DNA of 63,156 nt, the filler included, from Reticulomyxa filosa (taxonomy: Eukaryota > Protista > Foraminifera), in assembly GCA_000512085.1 (NCBI GenBank). It is 18 parts of 18 records of this genome, joined end to end, with 100 filler letters (N's around TTAATTAATTAA, not from the genome) between each part and the next. Parts side by side here need not be neighbours in the genome. Positions count along the whole stretch, not along the records: positions 3,011 to 14,614 come from ASPP01018112.1; 17 more parts are not named here. One strand, given 5' to 3'. Positions 3,011 through 11,900 of the stretch are shown here, piece by piece. Both the position numbers and the translations under genes were made by a program. A model generated the notes under the pieces. That model was not told the origin of the DNA. It ran no database searches and saw only the letters and a program-made list of their open reading frames with translations. The stretch's first letter is position 1, and every line of letters starts with the position of its first letter.

Positions 3011-3187
3011 ATTTCATCCAACAAAAAAAAAGTTATTAAAAAACCAATATCATATTTAAAAACTATAAGATTTGTAGATATTTTTAAAAAAAAAAATTAG
3101 GTCTAAATGTTGATTTTTCATGGAGAAAATCAATTATCATCATAGGATATCGTTTTAGGCGTTCAGTTTTCTTTGCAACATACTGTA
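3011..3187. mobile_element. Tc1/mariner-like terminal repeat end
   Basis: The reverse strand reads TA-CAGTATGTTGCAAAGAAAACTGAACGCC (TA target plus CAGT terminus). About 150 nt match 54366-54531 in inverted orientation and more loosely 18388-18564, 23480-23600 and 45538-45710. Confidence 0.7.
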
Positions 3188-4044
3188 TTACATAGTTTGA
3201 ATGAGCTACCTTTCTTTCAAGTTACTATTTTAATTTTACAAAAATATGGCGTTTGTATTTTGGTTTGCCGTTATTTTTTTTCAAAAATTTGAAAGATATT
3301 TTATCAAGTATGCTTCTCTAAATATTTAATAAAGCAAATAAAAAACAAACATTCACTAATGTATGTTTAGTGTTTTTTTAATGAAAAATACTATTAAACG
3401 TAACTACTCGATTATGAGGAAATAATTGAAAATCGTTTTTTTCTGTTAAGATATTACAGGCCTACAATGTAATAATATTCTTTTTAAGATTTTGCCTTTT
3501 AATCAAGTAATATTTTTACTTAGGACAACAAGTGGTAAACAAATTAAAAGATTGATTTGCATTTTTGCGTACGTACACACCAAAAATAACAGTTATAAAT
3601 TTGTTGTTCTATATGCAGGACAAGACCTACTGGTTAATGAACTCTGAAAATCCTTTTATCTCAAACTTCATATTTTCTATCGTATTTCTTCTTGTTTTGT
3701 TGTCTGTTGTCATTTATATTTTTCTTGATTTAACTATCTTGTTTTATTGAAAAATTGCTCGGAGAGCAATATTTTTTGTATTATACTTTGTGCGGTTAGT
3801 TGCTTGGGATTTGTTGTACGATTTAATATTGTGATGCCCACGTAATGACTTTAGAGTTCTTTTTTTCTTGTAAGTCCTTAGAGCGGTAATACTACATACA
3901 ATTAATGTCGCGTATTTTTATCAAAGTTTATTGTTAATCAAAATATGAGATAGTGTCTAACGGTTGTTCTTGTTTGCAACAAGTTTAAAAAAAACAGGGT
4001 TTTATTCATCACAACTTATTCAAGTTTTTAAAAGTGTTTAAATC

Positions 4045-7000
4045 ATGTCTACAATTCTCTTAGATAGTGGCATCAAGAGCCAAATATTGCACATCATTGC
4101 GTCTGTCGGGCACTGTAGTCTTCCTGTCAAATCAAACCAACACGTAATCGTCTGTTTGTTTTTAAAGATAGCGGAACAAAAAACGAAATAAATTTTGGGG
4201 GGAACATAAACGTGAATAGTCCCTGCAATTAGAAAGCTCTTCAATCAGTGGATTTAATGGAATTGTGGCCTATGTGGCATCAAAGTGCAGTGTGAAACTT
4301 ATTCCAGAAAATTTGGAAAGCGCAACATTTGAGCAGTTAGACCGATCATTGAAAGCAGCAGAATCTGACAATCACGTTGCCTGTTGAGTTTTTACTTGTT
4401 TGGAAATTTCCTAAGAAATTGCTTGAGAATATTGTTGATTGTTGTTGTAGTACTGAAAGAAGTAAACGATGCGTTGTTATTGAAATCATATCTGGTTGGT
4501 AGTCAATTATCAGTTGCAGATATCGGCACATTTGTTTGCTTATATAGTCATTACGTTTCGTAAATATTTTTTTGCTTTGTTTGTTTTTGGTCGTTCACTA
4601 TCATGTGTGATCACATTACATTCTTATAATCAACTTTTTTAAATATATATGGTTCTATCTCTCCTACGGGGTTGGGATATAGGCAAAACTCGGAAAAGAT
4701 GATATATACTTTGTATATCCAAATGTTACTCGATGGTATGTTTTATAAAGTCCATCCCAAAAAAAAATCTTCCCACCTTTCTTCATTCCTCTCTTTCAAT
4801 ACTAAACGTTCGCTCATCCCCCTTTTTTTCTTTTGATTGAAAATATCTGCAAACTAACATTGATAACAAATAAATGAATAAATAAACAATAGGATGGATT
4901 TGATACAAAACCGAACAGTGTCAAGTGGAGTGTTGCCCAAATTGAATATTCAAAATGAACCACCAAAAGCACAAGCAACCACTACCAAAGCAAAAGACAA
5001 AGGAAAAAAAAAAGAGGATGGCAAAGAGGAAAAAAAAGAAGAAAACAAAGGTCCAAACGCAAATCAATCTAAAAAAGAAAAAAAAGGCAAAGGAGCTGTT
5101 AAGTTTTTGCCCCTTTTTTTTTATTCAATAATGTTCCATGTTATAATTGTTTTTGTACTGTTCGCGGAAGTTTCACGCATACATAACAAATATGCATGTG
5201 TGGTCAAATGCGAAAAAAAAATTAATTCTGTATTTTTTTTTTTGGGGAGAGGAAATGAAGGAAAAAAAAATAATCAAATAAACGACACAACACAAAAGAA
5301 AAAAGCAGATATAAAATTGGAGGACCATTTGCAGGAAATCGAATTTATTAAACAACGCATTGAGTTGTTTGACAAGTTGTACGCGGAACAACAAAAAGGG
5401 CTCGAATCAAAGAAAAAATCCATTAAAATTACATTGCCAGACGGCAACAGCATAGATGGAGTCGCTTTTGAAACCTCTCCTTTTGATGTTGCGAAAAATA
5501 TTTCACTTGGCTTGGCCAAGCGCGCAATTGTCGCACGAGTCAATGACAAATTGTTTGATTTAACACGACCTTTGGAAGACGATTGCAAGTTGGAGATATT
5601 AACATTTGACGATAGTGATGGGTATGTTGTTTTTAAAATTTTTTTTTTTAAGAAACAAATAAAAAAAACAAATGCAAATACGGAATGATAAAAAAAAATA
5701 CAATAAACAATATCAATTGGGTTTAGCAAACATGTATTCTGGCACTCTTCTTCCCATGTGTTGGGAGAGAGTTTGGAACGATTGTTCAAAGGACAATTAA
5801 CAGTTGGCCCTGCGTTGGATCCTTCACAAATGTTGCACAATGGAGGTTTTTACTACGATGTGGATATATCTAGTTTGGGAGATGACACGTTTAGTCTTCT
5901 TTTTTTCCCCTCTCTATCAGAAGATCAAATTGTAATAAAATAACCTATTTTTAAAAAACAAAAAAACACAGTAAAATCAGTGAGCATCACTATGGTGCCA
6001 TTGAAGAGTTTATTAAGACAATTACAAAAGATAAACAACCCTTTCATCGTGTCATGTTAACCAAAGAACAAGCCTTGGAAATGTTCAAAGTTTAGTCAAT
6101 CAATCCCTTTTTTTTTTTTGAAACACAAAAATCAAAATAACTAAATGTACCGCGCAAAAAAAAAACGCAAAGTCTGAACGTGTGTCTTTCAATCTTTTTT
6201 TTTTAGTTCGAACAAGTATAAACAAGAGCTGATTAGTGAAAAAATCCCTGATGGTGCAACCTGCACTGCGTATCGTTGTGGACCATTGATTGATTTGTGC
6301 AAAGGACCACACATTCCAAACACAGACTTGATCAAAGCGGTGAAACTTGTGAAAAATGGTGCAACATACTGGCGTAATGACAGTAACCGAGATTCCTTGC
6401 AACGAATTTACGGAATATCATTCCCAGACAACAAATTGATGAAAGAATATGAAGAAAGAAAAAAAATGGCAGAAGAAAATGACCATCGTAAAATTGGACA
6501 AGATCAACAATTGTTCTTTTTCCATGACTTGTCACCAGGAAGCTGTTTCTGGTTGCCTCATGGCGCAAGAATTTACAACAAATTGCAACAATTTATTAGT
6601 GGCTGTTATCGAGACCGTGGATTTACCGAGGTTTGTTTCCAATATACGTGTTTATGGACCCTCTCTTCTTTTCACACAAATAGAAAAACAAGCACAAAAA
6701 AAAATGCAAATACCAAATATATACGCTCAGGTTATATCTCCAAACGTGTACAACTTCAAATTGTGGGAAGTCAGTGGACATGCTCAAAACTATGCCGAAA
6801 ACATGTTTTTGTTTGAATCCGAAGGACAACAATTTGGACTGAAACCAATGAATTGTCCTGGTCACTGTCTCATGTTCAAGAGTAGCTTAAGGTCCTATCG
6901 AGATTTACCATTGCGATTTGCTGGTCAGTATTTTTATTTATATTTTCTTTTTTTTTTCCTCCCCAGCATGAAACAAAACAATTAACAATTAACTGTTTAA

Positions 7001-8181
7001 AATAGATTTTGGCGCACTGCATCGCAATGAGATGAGCGGAAGCTTAACAGGATTGACACGTGTCCGAAGATTTCAACAGGACGATGCACACATATTTTGT
7101 CGACGTGATCAAATCCATCAAGAAGTTAGCAATTGCTTGCATTTCTTGGATTATGTTTATGGCAAATTTGGTTTCCGTTTTGAACTGGCATTGTCCACAC
7201 GACCAAAAGAGAAATATTTGGGTGACATTAAGGTATGGGATGAAGCCGAACGAATGTTAGCTCAAGCCTTGGACGATTTTGTGGCAAAACATAGCAGCCT
7301 TAAAGCGTGGAAATATAATCATGGAGATGGCGCTTTTTACGGACCTAAAGTCGACATTCATGTCTATGATTCATTGCATAGACAACATCAATGCGCTACT
7401 ATTCAACTCGATTTTCAATTACCTATTCGATTTGAATTAGATGTTAATTCATTCTGTCTTTTTTTTAATTATTACTATTTACTGTAGATGTGCGAGAATT
7501 TTTAAATACAAATTTAAAATGTGTACAATTTGTTTTTTTTTCCCATCCTTTTCCTACTTCCTCTATTTGTAAAATGGTTTGAGGATAGTTTAAAGCAGAA
7601 TCTGGTGGAGTGGAAAGACCTGTTATCGTGCACCGTGCAATTTACGGTTCATTTGAAAGATTTATTGCCATTTTGAGTGAACATTTGGGAGGAAAATGGC
7701 CATTTTGGCTGTCGCCCCGCCAAGTTTGCATCATCCCTGTTACAGGTAAAGTTGTTTGTTTTTTATGCCATAACTGTGAAAGGAAAGACAACATCAAAGA
7801 TGCTAATACGACGACAATACAGATGAATTCACTGAATATGCTCAAAGCGTACGTGAAATAATGCACAAAGCAGGATACTGGGTTGATGTCGATGACTCAA
7901 GAAATCATTTGCCAAAAAAAGTCAGAAATGCTCAAGTCAGTCAATACAACTTCATTTTGGTCGTCGGAGAAAAAGGTATGTTTTGTTAATTTTCTGCTTA
8001 AATTTGTCTGTTTTCCATTTTTCTCTTTATATTTGATAAATTTGTGGTTTTGTTATTGTTTTGTGTAGAGCGTGATGCAAAAGCAGTGAGTGTACGCAGA
8101 AGAGACAACACTGAACTTGGAAGCAAAACAATTGACGAAATGTTGGCATGGTTTAAAGAATTAGTTGAAAAATACGAATAA
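4045..8181 (+). CDS. TARS: Threonyl-tRNA synthetase (cytosolic type) with an N-terminal GST-like domain and Lys-rich linker
   Basis: Exons 4045-4143, 4220-4382, 4451-4554, 4683-4735, 4893-5621 (probable intron at about 5098-5250), 5727-5888, 5972-~6089, ~6207-6630, 6731-6923, 7006-7442, 7589-7745, 7823-7975, 8069-8181 (TAA). Motifs: TGS (ITLPDG, DLTRPLE), editing (FWHSSSH, DLCKGPH), catalytic ([61 protein letters not shown]) and anticodon-binding (WLSPRQV). The 6089/6207 junction needs a 1-nt correction or the alternative donor at 6095. Confidence 0.93.
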
Positions 8182-8907
8182 CGAAAGTACAACAACATCA
8201 ATCCATAGTGGTCGAGAGAAACAAACAAGGCAATCTCAGTCATGTTTGGAAAAAATATATTTTTAATCAAAACTATGATTTATTGTTTCTCTATTTTAAA
8301 ATCTTCCTTTAATTTTCACAACTAATTGTCCACGTTTGGTGGAACTTTTTCACTGCAAATGGTTCTTATATTTTTCCTTTGGAAACTAGGAATCATTTAC
8401 TTTTTTATCTCTGCATCCTTCGTTAGAAATTACTTTGTATTCCTGAGCGATTATTATCAATTTAAAAATGAAAAGGGTAGAACAAACATTAAACGTTGAT
8501 TGAAGGAAAAACAAAAATAAACAAAAAAGTACAAACAAATGCACTAACCAACACATAACAAGCACTCATGGTTGACTTACGTGTACCAAGATGTGGAGTA
8601 CATAACCCCAAAATTCTCCACGCGCGAGAAAACACAACACCGATTGGTAAACCCCACAATTCTACTTTACCCTACCCAAAAAAAATGGTTGGTTCATTGA
8701 AGACTCATGTGTGGCTCTCATTTAAAAATACTTTTTGTACTTGTTTATTTTTTTTTTCCATTTTGATCTAGTGCTCACAAATGAATAGAGCCAAGCGAAA
8801 TCCAAAGCAATATTTTGAGTCCAATATAACACCATTTTAGAAACAAAAATAAAACAACAAAACAAAAGAGGGAAAAAAAATAATGTAGGTGGGAAAAAAA
8901 AGAAAGA

Positions 8908-11900
8908 TTAGTAATATTTGCTCAGTTTATTGGAAATCACAGTAGCAACATAAACAATTCTGTCTTGCACATCGTTGCAGCTGCAATAGCAGTAGTTTGC
9001 CATGTGCATGATTTTATTGATATCTTCGTCTTTGTCTTTTTTAGGTGAAAATGGAGCAGCAAGTGCCAATTCTTTTGATTTACGTTTTTTGTCAATACTA
9101 GTTTGAACATTGACATTAATCGGGATCGGTATTTGTTTGGAGTAGTATTCAACTAAAGCATAAATCATAAACTTTAAATCAGCCATTTTTGGTGTCATTA
9201 TACCCATTGGAACTTTTGAGCCTTCATCTATATTGCGTAAAAATGCATGTTGCAACAATTCCTGTGCGCTTGGTCTTTTGTCAGGATTCTATCAATTTGA
9301 TATTTATTTGTACGTACAATAGATGTGTCATGCACTCACAGTTCCCTTTTTTCTGATTTTAAAGACAGACAAAAAATTATTAATATGTTCCACCTGGGTT
9401 AGACAAAGACGAACAAATTCACAGCAATCTTTGGTAAACATCTGTGGGTTTAATTTAGGAGGATTGGAACATAAACTGCTGGGCAAAGTATCAGGATGAA
9501 TAAAGGCTCCAGTACATAATTCATAAATAGTTAAGCCAAAGGACCACACATCCGCCTTCGTGTTGTAGCATACTCGATTGTTGTTGTCTTTTTCTGGAGC
9601 CAAATACTTTGCCGTTCCGCAATTGATTGTCAAAAGGCTATCCGCAATATCCAATTTGATGACCGTGCCAAAATCACTTAGCTTGATATCCCCATTAAGG
9701 CTGTACAAAATATTGCCAGGTTTGATGTCATTGTGAACATACCGATGTTGATGCAATTCCTTCAGCGCTTGCAAGATGGAATAGGAGGCATATTTGACAA
9801 TTGATTCCGGGCAAGGAACATTCGAATTATTGGAAATGTAGTCTTTCAGGGAGCCTCCGTCCATATACTCGAGTGCAATTTTCATTTCATTTGTATCGCG
9901 ATCTTTTCCATATCCGATCATGTCGATTATATACTTTGAATCTTTCATGTTTTCCAATACGCAGATTTCCTGGTCCGTTTGAATTTGAATCGTTTTGTGT
10001 GCGGAACGTGCGGTCTGAACGGTCGTGATTTGTTCAACAATACGTATACTTATACATGCACGATGTACATATATACATATATGTATATGAATATGCATAT
10101 ATATTCCTTTCTCCTATTTCCCTCCTCTTTTTGTTTTTTTGGATCAAAACTTTGATAGCTACGACTTGGCATGAAAGCAAATGAAAGGCCTTAACAACGA
10201 CACCAGTAGCACCACGACCAAGCCTTTCATCAGGCATAATAGCAAACTCTTCCATTGGGAAGACAGGATCGTCTTCGTCATGGACATCCTGTTCATTGCC
10301 ATGGTCACTCTCCAAATCCTTTCGCAAGTCTTTGACTTTATTCGCATGGGTCTTGACCTGCGCCATCGCAGTACGTTCATCGCGTTTGAAGCGTACCGAG
10401 CGTTTTTTATTGCCTTTTGTCGGAAATGCGCGTTTGTCACGTTGATTATCCTGTTTCCGTCCTTGTGCCTTATAGTCCTCATTATTGCTATTGATGCTAT
10501 TGTTATTGATACTATCGTTATTGATACTATTGTTATTGATACTATTGTTATTGATGCTATTGTTTCTATTGCTGTTGTTGTTGTTGTTGTTGTCATCGTT
10601 GTCTACATCAACAATCTCCCCTTCATACATAATTCCTCCTCCTTCGTCAAGTTCCATTTGATGCATACTTTCGGTAGTTTGCAGCTGCAAAATGCTTTTC
10701 ACGCTCAGTTGTTTTGTAAACGCCTCCAACTCTTGGTCTCCAAACTCATCGTCGTATGTGGACTTGGTGTCGGTGCGAACCAAATCAATCGGGAAATCGG
10801 ACTTGTTGTGTTCGACTGCTCCCGATTCGTCGCTGCTTTCTTTGGGCGAGGTTATTCGCACTTGTTTTTTTTTTTCGGCTTTTGCTCTTGTCCTTGTCCT
10901 TGTCCTTGCTCTTGCTCTTGTTCTTGCTTTTGATTCTCTTGTTTTTGCTTGTGTCTTTGCTTTTGTCTTTGCCTATGTTTCTGCTTGCGTTTGGACGGCT
11001 TTGAAGTACTGTCCACACTTTCGGGTATGCTCTCCGTCGTTCGATTCATTGCAATCCTTGGCGTCTGTCCTGGCAGCGATGAGGATGGCACTTCGCCGTC
11101 CTCGTCTTCGCTCGTGCCCGGCTTTGAGTTGTGCAAACTTTGATCAGTGTTCAGTGATGAGCCACTTTCCTCCTTGTCATCGTCATCATCGTCGTCCTTG
11201 TTATCATTGACAATGTCGATGTCGTTGTCATCATCGTCGCCACTGCTGGCCATTATTCGATTGTCTCGTGATTCTTCAATTTCTTTTTTTTTTTTTTTAC
11301 CACAAAAGTTCATTTTTTTTTTAATTTAAAAAAAGGGGTGTGTATTATGTTTAAAAAACAGTTGTTTTTTTTTGTAAAAAAAGACCGTTTTGCAGTGGGA
11401 TGGATCGCTTTGCTTGGATCTCCTTGATGTTGCAACTGGTGGGAATGTATTCGGGCGATCCAGAGCGCGAGCTGGAGGTCGACGTGGGGGCCGACGTGGA
11501 CGTGGTTGTCGTCACCACGAACGGCCGCAAAGACGAAGAAGTGGAGTTACCGCCGCCATTGTTGATGGAGATCAGATTGGAATGAAAGTTCACTCCATAC
11601 GGAATGGCGGGAGTCGACACGTCCGGAGTTATGTTTGCACGCATCTCTTTACCCGCCCACTTTTTCGAACTGTCTCCATTGTGCAGGGCACTTCCTACGG
11701 ATAAACTTTATTCATTTTTTTATTTTTTTATTCAATTTATTTACTTTATTTATTTATTTATTCGATTTGTTTAGTTTATTGGTTTGAGTTTATTTAATTT
11801 TTTTTTTTTTGAGTTTTGTTTTCTTGGTCCCCTTTTTCTCCCCTATCCCCAACAAACATCAACAAAAAGAAAGTACATTAGCGTTTCGCATACCTTCCTT

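Follow-up and report, generated by a model that had tools for sequence, protein, structure and literature searches.

A predicted GST-like N-terminal domain on a threonyl-tRNA synthetase of the foraminiferan Reticulomyxa filosa

Introduction

Does a threonyl-tRNA synthetase (ThrRS) gene of the foraminiferan Reticulomyxa filosa encode, in small exons upstream of the enzyme body, a domain resembling glutathione S-transferase (GST), and would such a domain tie the enzyme into a larger assembly? The question is raised by a locus at positions 4045-8180 (plus strand) of a 63,156-nucleotide stretch of R. filosa DNA, which was analysed as a whole and is called the window here. The locus lies on contig C18112, which occupies window positions 3011-14614, and the assembly that was searched comprises 101.9 Mb in 50,809 contigs. 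GST-like domains are the main adaptors of eukaryotic multi-synthetase complexes and of the complex between valyl-tRNA synthetase (ValRS) and EF1B. In yeast, and in most eukaryotes that have been studied, ThrRS is a free enzyme.

The best explanation of the locus overall, and a probable one, is a single gene for a cytosolic-type class II ThrRS with three sections. These are a GST-like adaptor of about 145 residues, a lysine-rich linker of about 60-80 residues, and a body with TGS, N2 editing, catalytic, and anticodon-binding domains. The fusion of the GST-like domain to ThrRS in one gene, as a prediction from DNA, is well supported by comparison with a relative.

Gene model and coding potential

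The piece of C18112 is AT-rich, with a G+C content of 0.23-0.46, and its introns are short and of the GT..AG type; it therefore belongs to a protist nuclear genome. The sequence-only reading had placed four exons upstream of the ThrRS frame, joined by GT-AG introns in phases 0, 1, 0, and 2 and running into position 4893. Translation exon by exon reproduces its peptides exactly (Table 1). Each of the four introns starts with GT and ends in a TAG acceptor, and the codons split by them are T+TA (Leu) and TG+G (Trp). G 4893 completes the Trp codon, and Met 4894 is the next residue. A stop (4039-4041) stands immediately 5′ of the ATG at 4045. The GST-like domain is spread over five small exons. Its predicted last helix shares an exon and an open frame with the lysine-rich linker, and a 268-codon open frame joins this exon to the TGS domain. 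This continuity argues for the earlier claim that the segment belongs to the ThrRS gene.

The body of the enzyme is complete. The class II ThrRS domains TGS, tRNA_SAD, tRNA-synt_2b, and HGTP_anticodon follow one another in the expected order, and tblastn with two full-length ThrRS proteins (P0036 and P0073) gives a colinear alignment over 5263-8175.

Coding potential was judged by codon log-likelihoods, for which 649 codons of the ThrRS body served as the training set. In the proposed frame all exons score positive, from +0.17 to +0.90 per codon; exon 1 has +0.18, and exon 2 has +0.52, the highest value among the four upstream exons. The alternative frames score lower in every exon and are all negative except for the +2 frame of exon 5 (+0.32). 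Scores of the introns and of the 5′ flank fall below zero in every frame except the +2 frame of intron 1 (+0.10). The G+C content is 0.41-0.42 in exons 1 and 2, 0.32-0.34 in exons 3 and 4, and 0.29-0.33 in the introns, so that exons 3 and 4 are barely above the introns. A run of 54 open codons has a chance of about 0.04, and open length alone is weak evidence because the non-coding 5′ flank has an open run of 65 codons, its longest.

A relative with the same order of domains

When the TGS exon was compared by phmmer with 1.84 billion representative proteins, the top match was P0001 (E 1.6e-29). P0001 is located on JGI contig L024, an intronless sequence of 1118 bp from an uncultured organism. 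L024 has, in order and on one strand, a GST-like open reading frame (ORF) of 176 amino acids (43-573), a lysine-rich stretch, TGS, and the start of the N2 domain. The occurrence of these parts on one intronless contig is comparative support for placing the GST-like segment in the ThrRS gene. The motif 'WHSSSH' and an insertion 'PSQ(M/S)LHN' are common to L024, the window gene, and a second R. filosa ThrRS on contig C5597, and are missing in 14 other ThrRS, which marks L024 as a specific relative. The lack of introns in L024, compared to six in the window gene, suggests a cDNA or an intron-poor genome.

The window exons align with the L024 ORF to different degrees. Exon 3 matches residues 88-119 with 50% identity (E 8e-9), a score that none of 2000 shuffles reaches. 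In exon 4, 'YPNVTRW', whose Trp is finished by exon 5, aligns with 'FPNISKW' (residues 133-139), and 'DLIQN..LP' of exon 5 aligns with 'DLIQQ..LP' (residues 141-154; 14/2000 shuffles). Exons 3 and 4 and the start of exon 5 are colinear with the ORF, and L024 thus continues without a break over the junction predicted at 4735/4893. Exon 1 aligns Met-to-Met with residues 1-33 and exon 2 is weakly colinear with residues 52-90, neither of them significantly (719/2000 and 132/2000 shuffles), and BLASTP of these two exons against the ORF gave no match. The stretch that runs from Met1 up to the conserved Trp measures 140 residues in the window and 139 in L024.

L024 contains two +1 frame shifts. One lies in an A-run at 568-574, where the GST-like ORF gives way to the ThrRS frame, and the other in a T-run at 932-936, where it breaks the conserved 'FWHSSSH'. 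The first shift reads AAA-TAA-A, a programmed +1 frameshift motif in Euplotes. A programmed shift of this type was considered for the first site and set aside, as the second, in the T-run, has no stop codon. For the same reason homopolymer error is favoured for both, and both are read as such here.

A protein homologue search with the L024 ORF returned only that ORF, and a metagenome pattern scan yielded only EF1B-gamma (L030) and a bacterial GST (L031).

Identity of the domain

The window exons were compared with databases one by one. Exon 3 (34 amino acids) matches Arc1p_N_like (E 0.0065), GST_C (0.014), GST_C_2 (0.021), and GST_C_3 (0.026) in Pfam, and no other families. Its Arc1p_N_like (PF21972) score in this single-exon scan is 17.2 bits, with a gathering cut-off of 27. 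Its top three PDB matches are the human EPRS GST domain (E 0.011-0.039), and enzymatic GSTs appear at 0.4 or worse. Exons 1, 2, and 4, and the longest stop-free stretches around them, have no Pfam match, exon 4 being too short for Pfam, and the only PDB phmmer match of exon 2 is a chance one (BUB1B, E 0.58). Two motifs typical of the domain, '(S/T)Y(L/I)VG..(L)(S/T).AD' and, about 20-25 residues further on, '(F/Y)PN(V/I).(R/K)W...(I)Q', are both present and in order. The first lies in exon 3 and the second across the exon 4/5 junction, and both are aligned with their counterparts in L024, EPRS, and AIMP3. The GST_C-clan matches of exon 3, the motifs, and the colinearity with L024 together point to an N-terminal GST-like segment of the synthetase/AIMP type, as the sequence-only reading had proposed.

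Whole-genome Pfam scans with PF21972 and PF00043 (GST_C) did not report the ThrRS locus, as introns divide its domain. A homologue search with the stop-free stretch 4894-5619 also scored nothing; lysine-rich words probably swamped the candidates.

The complete domain could be followed in L024. Its ORF exceeds the Pfam cut-offs for Arc1p_N_like (47.2 bits, cut-off 27, E 2.8e-12), GST_C_3 (34.6 bits, E 2.3e-8), GST_C (31.7 bits, E 1.8e-7), and GST_C_2 (27.9 bits). In phmmer against PDB it matches the EPRS GST domain (E 7.9e-9), AIMP3/eEF1E1 (1.9e-8), Plasmodium p43 (9.5e-6), and yeast GluRS-N (4.6e-4). AIMP2 (0.025) and EF1-gamma (0.92) are weaker, and enzymatic (delta-class) GSTs are found at 0.003 or worse. 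The nearest ESM Atlas clusters are eEF1E1/AIMP3 families, with a score of 0.93. Judged by such similarity, the domain lies nearer to those members that are non-enzymatic and form complexes than to the enzymatic GSTs.

An AlphaFold2 model of the ORF from a 7-row alignment has a mean pLDDT (predicted local distance difference test) of 63, and only its helical C-terminal half is confident, with pLDDT 77-92 over residues 81-150. GST or GST-like structures make up 50/50 of the matches listed by Foldseek and likewise by VIA-align, the latter with Z 8-9.9. The VIA-align matches include P. falciparum p43-N (Z 9.9, root-mean-square deviation 3.0, 89 aligned), P. berghei GluRS-N (9.8), yeast Arc1p-N (9.7), AIMP3 (9.4), and EF1B-gamma (5dqs_A 8.9, 5jpo_D 8.5); a Z of about 9-10 equals that of enzymatic GSTs, is common for helical models, and does not discriminate.

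The second ThrRS copy and a candidate partner

The second ThrRS paralogue lies on C5597 (L003, minus strand), with its TGS exon at 557-880, and this exon is 55% identical to that of the window. No GST-like or lysine-rich exon is recognisable in the 780 bp between the TGS exon and an upstream phosphatase-like gene, and hidden GST exons were rejected for this copy on that ground. Only one of the two ThrRS copies therefore has the appendage. A short ORF beginning 'MHSLFRQVNKRIGY' ends 60 nt upstream of the C5597 TGS exon in the same frame and could be an organellar presequence. The ORF further upstream is like a dual-specificity phosphatase, with the motif 'HCLAGAHRS'.

The paralogue also bears on a stretch between exon 5 and the TGS exon of the window gene. 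The C5597 exon starts after a 'tag' at the site equivalent to window position 5299, which supports an intron at 5098-5298. When translated, this stretch is a hydrophobic, T-rich segment with no counterpart in L024. Its length is a multiple of three, so that retention would add a hydrophobic segment and keep the frame; an intron at the alternative position, 5103-5249, also keeps the frame.

A genome search with the L024 domain found, apart from the ThrRS locus, only one place that resembles it. This is an Arc1p_N_like ORF on C20905 (L015, 491-1824; E 1.7e-7), also the only other such ORF found in the genome scan, and exon 3 is 37% identical to it. On C20905 the Arc1p_N_like ORF comes after GST-N-like pieces and an ORF of coiled-coil type, and the contig ends directly behind it. 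The protein may be a scaffold of the AIMP kind or else belong to the N-terminal end of a further synthetase, and is a candidate partner of the ThrRS domain.

Several GST_C matches were also seen on seven short contigs, C31313, C8917, C6743, C16259, C30051, C31477, and C13002 (L006-L011, L023). These have long intron-free ORFs rich in Ala, Arg, Gly, and Pro, which implies high G+C, and they look bacterial. The assembly probably contains contaminant or symbiont DNA.

Proposed function

Yeast Arc1p assembles with MetRS and GluRS through GST-GST contacts, as do human MetRS, AIMP3, EPRS, and AIMP2 in a tetramer, and ValRS with EF1B (PMC4394549). By analogy, the N-terminal domain of the window gene would pair with another GST-like domain as a protein-protein adaptor, and this pairing would attach the ThrRS dimer to an assembly of synthetases or of elongation factors. 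Non-specific tRNA affinity may come from the lysine-rich linker, which would help to hold the tRNA. The C5597 paralogue, which has neither appendage, would supply an untethered and possibly organellar enzyme. That ThrRS is recruited into a GST-scaffolded complex of unusual composition, as the sequence-only reading supposed, is conjecture. In its full form, the proposal is that the ThrRS of this rhizarian lineage is a built-in member of a GST-scaffolded assembly (multi-synthetase or EF1B) through an AIMP3/EPRS-type domain, with the appendage-free paralogue untethered or organellar; this is tentative, and its chance is put at somewhat less than even.

Weighing of alternatives

Several points weigh against the single fused gene. 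A look for RNA sequencing runs listed none, so that the four splices and the 5′ end of the window gene are predictions. A short ThrRS starting at Met 4894, just past the acceptor, is possible, the unspliced frame having a stop at 4879-4881. The L024 GST-like ORF ends at a TAA within the A-run while the ThrRS frame continues in +1, and this first shift could mark a genuine stop. Compared singly, exons 1 and 2 have no significant match in Pfam, PDB, or L024, and the Pfam scores of all window exons, taken one at a time, stay below the gathering cut-offs. In the L024 model the N-terminal half has a pLDDT below 55, and Foldseek gave no match for this model at E <= 0.001, the best being 0.009.

The view that no protein is made from the upstream pieces, which would be frames open by chance or a remnant in decay, deserves hardly any belief. 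The long open runs of the non-coding flank and the unmatched exons 1 and 2 would fit it. The codon scores of exons 1-5, which are positive and best in the proposed frame, contradict it, as do the negative scores of the introns and flank in nearly all frames, the matches of exon 3 to four GST_C-clan families and to L024, the colinear order, the lack of stops and frameshifts, and the conserved length of the domain. Two tandem genes are quite improbable. Exons 1-4 would then encode a stand-alone AIMP3-like protein and a separate ThrRS would start at Met 4894, with no 4735/4893 splice. The splice is indeed predicted from DNA alone, the Met stands at the very start of its exon with an in-frame stop upstream, and exon 4 read on into the intron stops three codons later, at 4746-4748, so that retention of intron 4 closes the frame. 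The L024 GST-like ORF likewise stops before the ThrRS frame, and the nearest Atlas clusters are stand-alone AIMP3-like proteins. However, the conserved 'DLIQN..LP' is encoded after intron 4, in the ThrRS frame and in the correct phase, and a stand-alone product would be without it. The stop in L024 is accompanied by another +1 shift, also in a homopolymer, that is undoubtedly an artefact. Only 157 nt would separate the two genes, which leaves no room for a terminator and a promoter, and the tight linkage is repeated in two organisms.

It is unlikely, to a slightly lesser degree, that the locus gives two products, a long GST-ThrRS from ATG 4045 and a short ThrRS from Met 4894, through a promoter in intron 4 or leaky scanning. 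Dual forms of aminoacyl-tRNA synthetases are known, such as the short ArgRS (PMC6794377), and the arrangement would be like that of mammalian ArgRS, which has a long and a short form, with a tethered and a free enzyme from one locus. The in-frame Met exactly at the start of exon 5 and the length of intron 4 (157 nt, the longest of the four) are consistent with it. However, the Met is not conserved, L024 having Phe there, and the separate appendage-free paralogue lessens the need for such a form. A further alternative accepts the fusion and differs in the docking site, which would be the EF1B complex, through the GST-like domain of EF1B-gamma, and not a multi-synthetase complex. This is rather unlikely, though the least so of the alternatives given here. 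In its favour, the EF1B-gamma domain is among the VIA-align matches of the L024 model, a short module in crustacean ThrRS resembles the N-domain of EF1B-beta that binds EF1B-gamma (5dqs_D, E 0.001-0.003), and vertebrate ValRS has the same order of GST-like domain, lysine-rich linker, and synthetase core (PMC4394549). In contrast, the closest solved relatives by sequence are EPRS, AIMP3, p43, and GluRS-N, with EF1-gamma far behind, and the same genome has the Arc1p_N_like protein as a more usual partner. A single gene for a GST-like domain fused to ThrRS thus stays the preferred reading of the locus.

Features of the locus and its neighbourhood

Table 1. Predicted features of the ThrRS locus in the window
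Feature	Position	Strand	Basis
Exon 1: 33 codons from the ATG, start of GST-like domain	4045-4143	+	per-exon translation, phase 0
Intron 1: 76 nt, GTAATC..AATAG, phase 0	4144-4219	+	
Exon 2: 54 codons + 1 base, middle of GST-like domain	4220-4382	+	translation
Intron 2: 68 nt, GTTGAG..TGTAG, phase 1	4383-4450	+	
Exon 3: 2 bases + 34 codons, core GST-C helices with motif	4451-4554	+	Pfam, PDB, L024
Intron 3: 128 nt, GTTTCG..TATAG, phase 0	4555-4682	+	
Exon 4: 17 codons + TG, ends 'YPNVTR' + 2 bases of Trp codon	4683-4735	+	
Intron 4: 157 nt, GTATGT..AATAG, phase 2, longest of four	4736-4892	+	
Exon 5: last GST-like helix ('MDLIQN..LP'), then lysine-rich linker	4893-5097	+	translation; L024 alignment
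Probable in-frame intron, T-rich, stop-free	5098-5298 (alternative 5103-5249)	+	no L024 counterpart; paralogue exon start
ThrRS N1/TGS exon	5299-5621	+	Pfam TGS E 1.1e-17; tblastn to ThrRS P0036, P0073
ThrRS N2/editing exons (about 5727-5880, 5975-6090, 6199-6632) and introns	5727-6632	+	Pfam tRNA_SAD E 1.7e-13; colinear tblastn
ThrRS class II catalytic-core exons (about 6729-6922, 7005-7440, 7590-7746) and introns	6722-7750	+	Pfam tRNA-synt_2b E 1.1e-7, 6.3e-24; tblastn
ThrRS anticodon-binding exons (about 7825-7976, 8068-8177); TAA 8178-8180	7825-8180	+	HGTP_anticodon E 3.6e-10, 0.0084

Downstream of the ThrRS gene, a protein-kinase-like gene with motifs such as 'HRYVHNDIKPGNIL' lies on the minus strand at about 8930-10010. 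Beyond it, the minus strand of the 8900-14000 region has long open low-complexity repeats rich in N, Q, and D, and tandem repeats like 'AATAACAATAGT' occur near 10480-10560.

Comparison with known synthetases and adaptors

The nearest solved relatives are AIMP3/eEF1E1 (p18) and the human EPRS GST-like domain (4bvy, 5bmu, 5a34, 6iy6), which the L024 ORF matches over about 80 residues with E 8e-9 to 4e-8. They share 'YLVG..(L)S.AD' and 'PN(V/I)..W' and a size of about 150-175 amino acids with the ThrRS domain, the N-terminal half of which is much diverged. Both are non-enzymatic adaptors that build the human multi-synthetase complex by GST-GST contacts (PMC4394549). AIMP3 is free-standing and the EPRS domain sits on a class I GluRS, whereas the window domain is placed on a class II ThrRS.

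The N-domains of yeast Arc1p, Plasmodium p43 (tRip), and GluRS (2hqt, 2hrk, 5zkh, 5zke, 8bcq) have the top structural Z values (9.5-9.9). Arc1p_N_like is the top Pfam family for both exon 3 and the L024 ORF, and the alignment with Plasmodium p43 extends back to ORF residue 30. A lysine-rich tRNA-binding segment follows the N-domain in Arc1p too. In contrast, Arc1p, p43, and GluRS continue into EMAP-type tRNA-binding domains or the GluRS core, and the window gene continues into ThrRS.

Vertebrate ValRS and eukaryotic MetRS and CysRS have the same architecture of GST-like domain, basic linker, and synthetase core. ValRS docks to EF1B, and MetRS to AIMP3 or Arc1p (PMC4394549). In the AARS Online table, GST is entered for no enzymes other than CysRS, GluRS-E, MetRS, and ValRS (PMC11580382), and a review of trypanosomatid synthetases lists it on the same enzymes only (PMC8319005). 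All synthetases listed as GST carriers are class I enzymes, unlike the window ThrRS, and the other carriers in current catalogues are auxiliary proteins. No GST-like ThrRS is described in the literature that was searched.

The sequence-only reading had stated that no ThrRS with this domain is known. This stands for the curated lists, which do not include ThrRS (PMC11580382), and has to be qualified for some crustacean and marine ThrRS, which carry a shorter module at the same position. A module of about 65 amino acids and a basic linker precede TGS in the amphipod Trinorchestia (KAF2356855.1), the copepod Tigriopus (TCALIF_05516), and the barnacle Amphibalanus. The same module is found in the TARA metagenome ORFs P0147 (L032, 1176-2237), P0016 (L034, 958-1866), and P0152; the set compared consisted of P0032, P0155, P0157, P0147, P0016, and P0152. 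It matches Arc1p_N_like with E 2.2e-5 to 2.5e-3, in addition to the EF1B-beta N-domain as given above. In P0147 and P0016 the module and ThrRS are in single uninterrupted ORFs on genomic contigs. Like the window domain, it is helical, of the GST_C clan, and followed by a basic linker before TGS, but it lacks the first 85 or so residues and is EF1B-beta-N-like, not AIMP3/EPRS-like. It is probably an independent acquisition. No description of this module was found in literature searches either.

Vertebrate TARS3/TARSL2 (ThrRS-L) is a duplicated ThrRS whose N-terminal extension leads it into the multi-synthetase complex, with the other copy free. R. filosa resembles this arrangement in that it has two ThrRS paralogues, of which one bears an appendage and the other does not. 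The earlier statement that TARS3 uses a different device is borne out: its extension has two leucine zippers that bind AIMP1 and ArgRS and is not a GST-like fold (PMC6794377). The two origins are independent.

What is new in the window gene, as predicted, is that in a group of protists that has been little studied a class II enzyme has acquired a full AIMP3/EPRS-type adaptor. Introns divide this domain and both whole-genome Pfam scans left it unreported, and similar appendages may therefore be missed in other intron-rich protist genomes. A GST-like domain on ThrRS predicts a complex of different composition. If the proposal is true, it would be convergent with vertebrate TARS1/TARS3 by another adaptor, and the complex would have a composition unlike any characterised. 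With the crustacean module and TARS3 counted in, ThrRS would then have gained a tether on at least three occasions, each time by a different device, which supports tethering as repeatedly advantageous.

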